From: Octopus bimaculoides
Lineage: Eukaryota
Length of the DNA stretch: 64,000 nt
Assembly: GCF_001194135.2 (NCBI RefSeq)
Contig: NC_068982.1
Coordinates: forward strand, 155,845,501-155,909,500
Direction: 5' to 3'
Shown here: piece after piece, positions 50,500-52,985 of the stretch
Numbering within the stretch: the first letter of the stretch is position 1
Layout: each line of letters starts with the position of its first letter
Position numbers and translations under genes: made by a program
The notes under the pieces: model-generated
What the model saw: only the letters and a program-made list of their open reading frames with translations
What the model was told of the DNA's origin: nothing
Database searches by the model: none

Positions 50500-52985
50500 A
50501 CTTAAAGCAAAATCAATAAGAAAACAGTACACGAAACGTGAGCTATCTGCAAATTCTACATAAAAAGTTGTCTGCTGGCATGGAGAGATGGGGATGAACT
50601 GCTACTTTGCGCATCTAAAACTCAGGCAAAGTGAAACTCAAGGTAATTACCACTCTCCACTTAGCTAACAAGGTAGAATAATAATCACACGCAAAGAAAT
50701 CCAAAGCCCACAATACGCTTGCAATTGAGAAGACCTCCAAAAAATAATAGACCCAAGGTGCCTACCATTACCGCCAAGCGAAGCGTCTCGCTAGTTCTAT
50801 TTTGAAATATTTGAGGTCTCTTACAAGGCAACAGTAAAAGCAAAATTGCGTACCCGAGGGATCTCTGTGCCTGCAATTAATTCATATCCATTGCACTTGC
50901 AGAAACATCTATTTGCAGACATAAATGATGCAGAGTCACACATATCAATGAATGCTGTGTTCTGTACAGACAGAAGAGATCAAAGTCACGGTGGAGTCGT
51001 GCATGAAGATGTCACACCATTAACTCTGTTGTTATATTTGAAGTGAGTCTGTAACACACTCATAGTGTATTTAAAACAACTTGATGTGGTAATATACACA
51101 TATTACTGCAAAATGCCTCATAATATGATGATAAATTTGAGGATAGCCTCAGACAAAAAGAAAAGGTATTGACCAATCTAGGCCAACACATCAATATGCT
51201 CCTACTGGGTAACTTCAACCTCCCAAATGCTAAAGAGTCTGAAGGCCACAGCCTTTCTGGGATGTCACTGAATGAACAAAGACAATCAGATTTCTTAGTT
51301 GAACTTTCTAATTTACTGTTCATGGAACAAGTGATACACCAGCCAACCAGGGGTAACAACATTTTGGATCTTTGCTATGCAAATGATATTGACCTTATCC
51401 ATTGCGTGAAGTGACACTAACAGCTTCCTCGGTCCACATCATTGTAGAACTAACAATGTATGGTCCTAGGCGAACTGCTGGCATCTACCATGTAAGAAGG
51501 ACTCAAGACATATTCAACTTGAATTTTCATAAAGCAATCTGGAAATCAATCTGCAAAAATATCCATAAACAAAACTAACCCGACTGTCTGTCTATGCAAG
51601 ACAACGACATAAAACTTAATCAGTTTATGTCGATATGTGCACTAAATATGTCTCAGTAAAAATAGGCCAGAAATATCCCAAGATAAAATCCTCAGAGACA
51701 AGAAAAACATTCCTGAGACGTAAAACAAAAGGTTGCGTTGGTAGCTGAAAGATAGTGAAAAGTCTAACTTAAGATGGACACTCCAGGAATTGAAGGGAGA
51801 ATCAAGGAGCAGAGCAGAGAGAGAGAGAGAGAGAGAGAGAGAGAGAGAGAGAGAGAGAGAGAGAGAGAGAGAGAGAGAGAGAGAGAGAGAGAGAGAGAGA
51901 GAGAGAGAGAGAGAGAGAGTGAACTGCACTGTGGAAAGCATAAGTACAACCCCCAGAGCCTTCATAAATTTGCAAAGGAATTAGCCACAGTACAGTACAA
52001 AACAGGACTATTGTTTCAAGAGAATGGTTCACTGACCGCAGAACCCCAAAAAGGATAAATGAAGTACTTAGTGAACAATTCACCTCCCCGTTGGGGCTTA
52101 AATTAATATACAAGTGGGCTGAGAAAAACAACATGCAGTTTAATGTTGGGAAATTTCAAGTACTGCACTATCAGCTCACAAATCTACCACAGCCTGCTTA
52201 TACAGGACCCAAAGGCACTGCAATCCCAGAGTCACAGACAGTAAGTGATGACTTGGGGATCGGTATGCATCATTGCATTACCAAGATGGCAACAAAGTGT
52301 ATACAAAGGTCCTTCATGACAAGAGGTTAAAAAGTCGTGTTGACCCTGTGCAAGACCTTTGTTCTCAGTCGCGTAGATTGTTGCTCTCACCTGTGGTCAC
52401 TGTATAGTGTCAAATTAACAGCAGAGCTTAGAGCGATCCAACGTTATTACATTAAAAAGATTGTCACACTGTAGTAGATGGACTACAGGGAAAGGCTGGA
52501 AAGAACTATGACTTTACTCCTTGGAGTGAAGACGCAAAAGATATATATATATAATAATTAACATATGGAAAATTCTCAAAGAGCTAGTACCTAGCTAGTA
52601 CCGGACGCCATTGCGTTGTTCCAAAGGTACCGTCTACTCCACCTAAAGCAGGGACAATATACTACAATATCTTGGGACTTAAAGGCCCACAGGTCTTCAA
52701 TGTCCTGCCGAAAGAATTAAAAACAATGTGGATGTGGATGTCCTCAAAAAGGAATCGGTCAGTCTTTTATTCATGCAACCAAATGAACCGACGTTCCGGC
52801 ATGAAGTACAGACGAGGACAACCGTGTCAAACTTCACCACACACCTAATGAGTCAAGTCAACAATCAAGAAAAAGTACCTGCAAGAATGGTGATATGAAA
52901 TTCCATCAGAAGTAATCAACAACGGTGGCGCTCTAGAATGACCGCAGCCGCATGGCTGAAACACAAAAGAAATAAAAGAACTACA
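50500..52985 (+). mobile_element. CR1-type LINE skeleton (ORF1 remnant, APE endonuclease, RT core deleted, C-terminus and tail)
   Basis: CWHGEMGMNCYFAH (CCCH-like); LNI*GL...IALAET...DRRDQSHGGV; LLGNFNLP; QPTRGNNILDL; KWAEKNNMQFNVGKFQVLHY; LKGPQVFNVLPKELK; internal (GA)n at 51816-51919. Confidence 0.85.
51816..51919. repeat. (GA)n microsatellite inside CR1 ORF2
   Basis: Directly visible. Confidence 0.95.

Follow-up and report, generated by a model that had tools for sequence, protein, structure and literature searches.

The 3' tails of CR1 long interspersed nuclear elements (LINEs) have been described as a "typical hairpin" followed by an 8-bp microsatellite (PMC5729268), and in LINEs of the stringent type the ORF2 (open reading frame 2) protein, ORF2p, binds the stem-loop of the tail (PMC4176376, PMC1636434). 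Here, we report that a family of short interspersed nuclear elements (SINEs), SINE-A, and the remnant of a putatively CR1-like LINE, LINE-A, end in a common tail of this kind in Octopus bimaculoides. Both lie in one stretch of 64,000 nucleotides (nt) (assembly GCF_001194135.2, contig NC_068982.1, positions 155,845,501 to 155,909,500 of the forward strand), hereafter called the window, to which all coordinates below refer.

Among the closest described systems are the amniote CR1/SINE pairs (TguSINE1 and PittSINE with CR1-X, and the tortoise Pol III/SINE with PsCR1), in which a tRNA-type head is joined to a LINE-derived tail (PMC5729268, PMC3747384). As in the tails of SINE-A, a hairpin taken as the binding site of the reverse transcriptase (RT) is followed there by terminal tandem 8-nt repeats without poly(A), and heavy 5' truncation is common to the amniote system and to the copies in the window. 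The octamer differs, being AUUCURUG in amniotes versus (GTAAAAGA)n and (ATTAAAGA)n after the hairpins in the window, and a single RT-binding hairpin has been described for amniote CR1 (PMC5729268) versus two predicted here; moreover, the host is a mollusc and the CR1 membership of its elements is unproven. Mollusc SINEs of the CORE, V, Meta and Deu types have been paired with CR1, CR1-Zenon, L2 or Nimb LINEs through tail homologies of 35–61 bp with 72–95% identity, and a CORE-SINE with a CR1 partner was reported in one bivalve; the bivalve homologies are similar in size and identity to the one described here (PMC11481361).

Eel UnaL2/UnaSINE1 and zebrafish ZfL2 depend on the tail stem-loop to retrotranspose, and their tails continue past it into short 3' repeats (PMC1636434, PMC4176376); UnaSINE1, moreover, belongs to the CORE-SINEs (PMC3747384, Table 1). 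Recognition in these systems was proven by experiment and needs specific loop nucleotides, whereas the loop of the downstream hairpin in the window varies freely among copies. The repeat unit and the number of hairpins also differ from those of the octopus tail.

The octopus SINEs OR1, OR2 and OK were reportedly described by Ohshima and Okada in 1994, and octopus SINEs have been brought up in discussions of genome rearrangement and neural expression. Which of them is the CORE member, OR1 or OR2, is a point on which papers disagree (PMC4824008 versus PMC4758252). The available excerpts of the octopus repeat papers class the SINEs as tRNA-Core or tRNA-Deu, describe CR1 families as recently active and tRNA-Core SINEs as dominant (PMC13282606, PMC8967140), and put SINEs at 11.6% of the O. 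vulgaris genome (PMC13282606). SINE-A, compared by description only, has a putative pol III-type head like that of OR1, OR2, OK and the "SINE/tRNA-Core" class. A compilation of SINE/LINE pairs from 2013 lists no cephalopod pair (PMC3747384), the same excerpts name no partner LINE of the SINEs, and a literature search on strings of the tail sequence returned nothing relevant; an earlier description may stand in the original octopus SINE papers.

A 3' tail common to SINE-A and LINE-A

When the last 100 nt of the best SINE copy were aligned locally with the LINE tails, the alignment with LINE-A scored 44, compared with 16.0 ± 2.6 for dinucleotide shuffles (z = 10.7; 0/2000 shuffles as high). Some 62 nt (~52921-52982) are shared, with about 77% of positions identical, and the terminal (NTAAAAGA)2 octamers fall within this stretch. 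A shared tail had been proposed in the initial annotation from a handful of quoted strings, and both the proposal and the strings (at 52962, 17249-17287, 7059, 3135-3157 on the minus strand and 49541-49560) were confirmed. A scan of the window for GGCCGCAGYCNNNNGRCTGAAAC with up to 3 mismatches allowed gave six matches, with 0.01 expected, and brought in new copies at 45290-45312 (-) and 59572-59594 (+); self-BLAST added SINE copies at 1328-1741 (-) and 8113-8375 (+). On these grounds we consider it likely that the last ~60 nt of SINE-A descend from the 3' untranslated region (UTR) of the LINE-A lineage, in a standard SINE/LINE common-tail relationship.

The LINE-A element, at ~50.7-52.98 kb, consists of the following parts:

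50760-52898, plus strand: coding remnant of LINE-A, from three-frame translation, the list of open reading frames (ORFs) and tblastn of stitched pieces
52921-52962, plus strand: core of the LINE-A 3' tail, with upstream hairpin GGU.G.GCGC[UCUA]GAAU.G.ACC, downstream hairpin CAGCC[GCAU]GGCUG, then AAAC
52963-52982, plus strand: LINE-A terminal repeats ACAAAAGA AATAAAAGA, octamer-like (NTAAAAGA)2, matching the (GTAAAAGA)n of the SINE and lying within the significant alignment

The coding remnant, whose domains were called by eye from the three-frame translation, comprises an APE-endonuclease-like stretch (~50760-51420; ...LLLGNFNLP...QPTRGNNILDL...), a linker, the C-terminal part of the RT (52079-52560) and a C-terminal domain (...FNVLPKELK... 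/ ...LKKESVSLLFMQPNEP...) that runs to ~52850-52898. Within 51860-52090, the linker passes almost straight into the C-terminal part of the RT at ~52079, and it carries a (GA)n insert at ~51860-51925. Between the end of the C-terminal coding remnant and the tail, which has the same orientation, there are some 22-110 nt; the tail string CGGTGGCGCTCTAGAATGACCGCAGCCGCATGGCTGAAAC ends at 52962. Because the tail directly follows the C-terminal coding remnant, and because a second LINE, LINE-B, is laid out alike, the segment 52921-52982 is the extreme 3' UTR of LINE-A itself, as seen in the one LINE-A copy of the window. The scenario that the initial annotation had named as its own refutation, in which a SINE fragment inserted by chance at the end of the LINE, is accordingly unlikely.

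The two parts of LINE-B are as follows:

49153-49482, plus strand: intact C-terminal ORF of 109 amino acids (...FNIVPKQIKEEKDPISFKRSLDRFLQGIPDKPP...), with motifs matching the C-terminal domain of LINE-A
49510-49560, plus strand: LINE-B 3' tail, with upstream hairpin CAGGU.G.GUGCUA[UUAAGU]UAG(A)CAU.G.GCCUG, downstream hairpin GACCA[GUCUU]UGGUC, then GAAAC

LINE-A and LINE-B provide the only two LINE C-termini that tblastn found in the window, and each is followed by a hairpin tail within tens of bases. In LINE-B, 27 nt separate the stop codon from the first hairpin; the spacing in LINE-A is similar, at 22 nt, provided that the element originally stopped at 52896-52898. Searching with the LINE-B ORF returned a single protein homologue, XP_014784343.1 of O. 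bimaculoides (64% identity), and the homologue search with the stitched C-terminal translation of LINE-A gave zero matches.

The initial annotation had also presented the LINE-B tail as a variant of the same stem, and this was not supported. Its similarity in local alignment was not significant either to the SINE (z = 1.0) or to LINE-A (z = 0.4), a covariance model of the tail did not recover it, and it carries no terminal octamer repeats. Since the MAFFT alignment misplaced LINE-B, it was compared by hand and by motif. The pattern GGTGCT-N(4-14)-CATGGCC has four matches in the window, namely three SINE copies and LINE-B only, with 0 expected, and the upstream hairpin of LINE-B is nearly base-for-base that of the SINE; its downstream hairpin differs at 4 of the 5 pairs. 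What LINE-B has in common with the SINE tail is therefore the strands of the upstream hairpin and the overall layout only.

SINE-A is represented by five copies:

45270-45753, minus strand: best full-length copy, with tail hairpins at 45290-45331, a covariance-model score of 84.7 bits and a terminal (GTAAAAGA)n
1312-1741, minus strand: full-length copy found by self-BLAST, with one nucleotide deleted from the 3' arm of the downstream hairpin
6625-7092, plus strand: older diverged copy, ~70% identical to the other copies
8113-8375, plus strand: copy found by self-BLAST, its 5' part lost in an assembly gap and one pair of the downstream hairpin broken
17231-17309, plus strand: 5'-truncated copy of 79 nt, 94% identical to the 45290 copy

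The last of these contains the tail at 17249-17287, ending in GGCGGTGCTCCAGCATGGCCGCAGTCAAGTGACTGAAAC, which the initial annotation had chosen as the example of SINE-A; the tail is indeed there, in what is merely a truncated copy, and the full-length elements are at 45280-45753 (-), 1328-1741 (-) and 6625-7085 (+). The tails of the four main-type copies are ~85-94% alike, the copy with its tail at 7075 being an older outlier. Aligned, the long copies show a head with an A-box-like TGGCTGTGTGG and a B-box-like GGTTCAGTCCC, a CORE-like body, an internal microsatellite, a 3' region, the two-hairpin tail and (GTAAAAGA)n, with terminal repeats reading AAGTAAAAGA GTAAAAGA. The head would be tRNA-derived, judging by these boxes, and the body (ACCTTGGGCAAGT...GCCTC) is one that we take to resemble the CORE domain or MIR core. 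A sub-threshold Rfam match to a CRISPR repeat was spurious.

The internal microsatellite occupies the same position in all three full-length copies (45440-45600 (-), 1480-1600 (-) and 6790-6925 (+)) and differs in type, being (TA/TG)n, (TG)n and (ATCT)n. The unit upstream of it, on the 5' side, ends in GACGGAAACTGAAAGAAGCCCGTCGTAT and contains a GACGG/CCGTC hairpin. SINE-A may be a composite of two units fused at an old tail.

Three further copies consist of the tail only:

3102-3160, minus strand: tail of LINE-A type matched by the covariance model, CAGCC[UCAA]GGCUG, AAAC, ..AAGAATAAAAGA
57352-57428, minus strand: tail matched by the covariance model at 57369-57422 (-) without having been used in training, E = 8.7e-8
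59569-59604, plus strand: short and degenerate tail found by the motif scan and the covariance model, UAGUC[CAAU]GACUG then AAGC

The first of them matches the LINE-A tail with 80% identity across 60 nt (self-BLAST E = 1e-6) and has an (AT)n run upstream. The second has the upstream hairpin GUGG-UGC[CCCA]GCACGCCC and the downstream hairpin CAGCU[UUAA]AGCUG, then AAGC and octamers of its own, (ATTAAAGA)n. It sits within, or abuts, a remnant of another retroelement (57440-57700 (-)), whose C-terminal region, of the …KPDIVLIEKESKLCWIIDIACP… type, has further remnants at 41620-41887 (+) and 15519-16100 (+).

Taken together, LINE-A and SINE-A have homologous 3' ends that include the same terminal tandem repeat, in the extreme 3' UTR of the LINE. 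The end typical of CR1, a hairpin and then an 8-nt repeat without poly(A), was found in LINE-A, in the SINE copies and in the 57369 tail, with LINE-B lacking the octamer. Severe 5' truncation of the CR1 type is also evident, LINE-B keeping ~400 nt and the tail-only copies 35-80 nt (3102-3160, 57352-57428, 59569-59604).

Two hairpins and their covariation

Folding shows that the tail is built of two adjacent hairpins, an upstream one (HP1) and a downstream one (HP2). The shared module reads GGY·G·GYGC[loop]GMAU·G·RCC for HP1, with a G/G 1x1 internal loop, then one unpaired base, the 5-bp HP2 CAGYC[4 nt]GRCUG, AAAC(A) and tandem octamers (NTAAAAGA)n. In the SINE, it takes the form GGC·G·GUGC[UCCA]GCAU·G·GCC, G, CAGUC[AAAU]GACUG, AAAC and folds at -17.8 kcal/mol (z = -3.3). 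The LINE-B tail folds at -20.7 kcal/mol (z = -3.9) into a SINE-like two-hairpin layout, with HP1 extended and HP2 different. The 42-nt core of LINE-A adopts the same layout weakly (-12.2 kcal/mol, z = -1.0), because two inner pairs of HP1 are broken. The initial annotation had recognized a single stem-loop; that hairpin is present, and the upstream one (GGYGGYGC…ATGRCC) had been overlooked. The ATG(G/A)CC that it had listed as a persistent flank is in fact the 3' strand of HP1, and its G/A change pairs with the C/T change in GG(C/T)GG. This flank and the GAAAC that follows HP2 do persist largely, with AAGGCC in the 7075 copy and GAAGC in the 59594 and 57369 copies as departures.

Pairing was counted in eight tails of the window, LINE-B excluded. 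Paired cells made up 93.8% of the total, as against 15-43% in slid registers, and compensatory changes on both sides were found at 3 of the 12 pairs. The covariation score was 0.158, compared with a shuffle value of 0.099 (0/500 shuffles). A separate pair table was made by hand, with each segment verified in the window. At the third outer pair of HP1, the SINE has C-G, LINE-A has U-A, LINE-B has U·G and the 57369 copy has G-C. In HP2, pair 4 is U-A in the SINE, U·G in the 7075 copy and C-G in LINE-A, the 3135 and 57369 copies and LINE-B, while pair 5, otherwise C-G, is U-A in the 57369 copy, a new compensatory change, and A-U in LINE-B. The older SINE copy (6625-7092) has the HP2 form CAGUC[UAAU]GGCUG with its U·G pair, and its HP1 is partly decayed, with one C-G replaced by U-A. 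Three separate insertions (52962, 3135 and 57369) have C-G at pair 4, which implies that active masters already carried this state and that it did not arise by private decay. The loop of HP2 varies in nearly every copy (AAAU, AAGU, CAAU, UAAU, UCAA, GCAU, UUAA). As in UnaL2-type tails, the stem-loop has been kept by compensatory change, here in few independent lineages; the conserved loop nucleotides of those tails (PMC1636434) have no counterpart among the window copies.

The covariation claimed by the initial annotation is thus borne out in part. The compensatory changes it implied at one pair are there (T-A, C-G and T·G), another pair adds C-G to U-A in the 57369 copy, and all of them come from few lineages and mostly from decaying copies. 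Overall, the covariation in the tail stems is real but thin, with few independent lineages and low power. The covariance model was trained on tails of the window and recovered every training tail. The two-hairpin layout is only a mildly new detail, and the common-tail model itself is unchanged by it.

The partner LINE and other readings of the tail

Several observations weigh against the descent of the SINE-A tail from a LINE-A type 3' UTR. Every comparison was made within the 64,000-nt window, and the predicted tail structure was assessed on the same sequences from which it was derived. Only one LINE copy bears a SINE-type tail and it is decayed: its RT core is almost wholly deleted, stops and frameshifts are numerous, and the tail itself, at ~77% identity, has a different HP2 loop (GCAU versus AAAU) and an unpaired inner HP1. 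Extended to 68 nt of context, the LINE-A tail folds no better than shuffles (z = -1.3). Most of the compared copies are dead and decay neutrally, so that few comparisons reflect selection on active masters, and the counting tool itself cautions that related sequences may outscore its column shuffles even where there is no structure. ARAGORN and Rfam detected no tRNA in the SINE-A head or anywhere else in the window, a search for target-site duplications found none that were convincing in flanks rich in microsatellites, and Pfam returned no domain at E <= 1 for the three LINE protein remnants. The name CR1, finally, was given on tail architecture and the literature and not on phylogeny, which the deletion of the RT core makes impossible for LINE-A, and it is unproven.

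The initial annotation went further and held that the shared tail identifies the partner LINE. This goes too far: LINE-A is dead, internally deleted and diverged, with a different loop, and for these reasons it marks the partner lineage at best, rather than the actual partner. We infer that the true partner was a related LINE subfamily. If the analogy with CR1, UnaL2 and ZfL2 holds, the ORF2 protein of a stringent-type, CR1-like LINE would bind the structured RNA tail, the octamer repeats would anneal at the nicked target and prime target-primed reverse transcription, and SINE transcripts ending in the same tail could be copied in trans. Frequent 5' truncation in such a process would leave tail-only fragments of the kind seen in the window.

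The alternative that survives best, possible and yet clearly the lesser prospect, is that the partner belonged to another LINE lineage, either LINE-B-like or unsampled, or that the SINE tail is a mosaic of a LINE-B-like HP1 and a LINE-A-like HP2 with octamers. The exact GGTGCT...CATGGCC is shared by the SINE and LINE-B, where LINE-A has GGCGCT...AATGACC; the loops of LINE-A (GCAU) and the SINE (AAAU) differ, and in zebrafish L2 LINEs it is the loop that determines specificity (PMC4176376); bivalve SINEs, in turn, have multiple LINE partners (PMC11481361). However, LINE-A is heavily decayed, and its HP1 differences, two inner-stem mismatches, may postdate insertion, while LINE-B has neither the HP2 sequence nor the octamers of the SINE and was detected neither by alignment nor by the covariance model. 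Common descent of all three tails from one CR1-like 3' UTR explains the pattern without recombination.

A rather doubtful extension of these observations is that the module is bipartite, with an upstream hairpin of conserved sequence (GGYGGUGC...GCAUGGCC, G/G internal loop) common to several CR1-like lineages and a downstream hairpin of variable sequence that sets lineage specificity. This would parallel the general stem and specific loop recognized by zebrafish L2 ORF2p, except that each function would have a hairpin of its own. If it were true, the dominant octopus SINE, bearing both parts, could be recognized by two or more LINE lineages, which would help to account for its very large copy number in octopus genomes.

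It is improbable that the tail is genuinely shared while its stem-loops evolved without structural selection, recognition, if any, being by primary sequence (CCGCAG...CUGAAAC and octamers). With 3+4 and 5 bp the stems are indeed short, and the few double changes are for the most part transition pairs (C-G to U-A). By our own estimate, any one pair would acquire a matching second change with a chance of ~0.15-0.2 at ~22% divergence; in addition, shuffle statistics are, as the counting tool itself notes, inflated by relatedness, and conservation is higher in the flanks CCGC and GAAAC than in the stem. Nevertheless, compensation occurred at four pairs distributed over both hairpins (HP1 outer 3, with four states, HP1 inner 4, HP2 4 and HP2 5), and the HP2 loops vary freely while the stems are paired in all copies but two obviously damaged ones. 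LINE-B has a 5-bp hairpin at the equivalent place with 4 of 5 pairs changed, and the C-G state of pair 4 is common to three independent insertions.

Chance juxtaposition, in which 52921-52982 would be a separate tail fragment at the end of a LINE whose own 3' end was lost, is very improbable: the window has many tail fragments of 35-80 nt (3102-3160, 17231-17309, 57352-57428, 59569-59604), there is one LINE-A copy only and the similarity to the SINE begins abruptly at ~52921, but the tail lies in the same orientation some 22-70 nt behind the C-terminal remnant with no space for another 3' UTR, LINE-B with its intact C-terminal ORF is laid out alike 27 nt past its stop, a hairpin tail stands behind both LINE C-termini of the window, and the LINE-A tail differs from main-type SINE tails in a stem pair, the loop and the repeat unit and groups with the 3135 (-) copy.

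Descent of the SINE tail from a LINE-A type 3' UTR, our preferred reading, adds one more example of a common tail in a clade that is short of examples. A tail with two hairpins and octamers also provides a handle for finding the active partner subfamily genome-wide and for dating the co-amplification of SINE and LINE.

Further scans and other features of the window

A scan of viral contigs with the tail pattern gave zero matches. Matches in metagenome and bacterial-genome contigs were rejected as chance and are bacterial-looking; four of them (L001, L002, L005 and L006) are one identical sequence (…CGCATGGCCGCAGACATGGGCCTGAAACAATTCGAGGGC…), likely bacterial coding DNA with a GC content of ~0.53-0.54 and unrelated to the SINE.

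The window is low in GC, with plentiful microsatellites and many assembly gaps. It contains 5249 N in 16 gaps, mostly beside microsatellites (for example 54-894, 7617-8112, 43804-44391 and 61453-62005), and fits a short-read octopod scaffold. On the plus strand at 3479-3892, a 137-amino-acid ORF (…RAVIVVTKGEHSDLEISRSLKVARSFVYKVCKELETEDG…) resembles the N-terminal helix-turn-helix part of a Tc1/mariner-type transposase.

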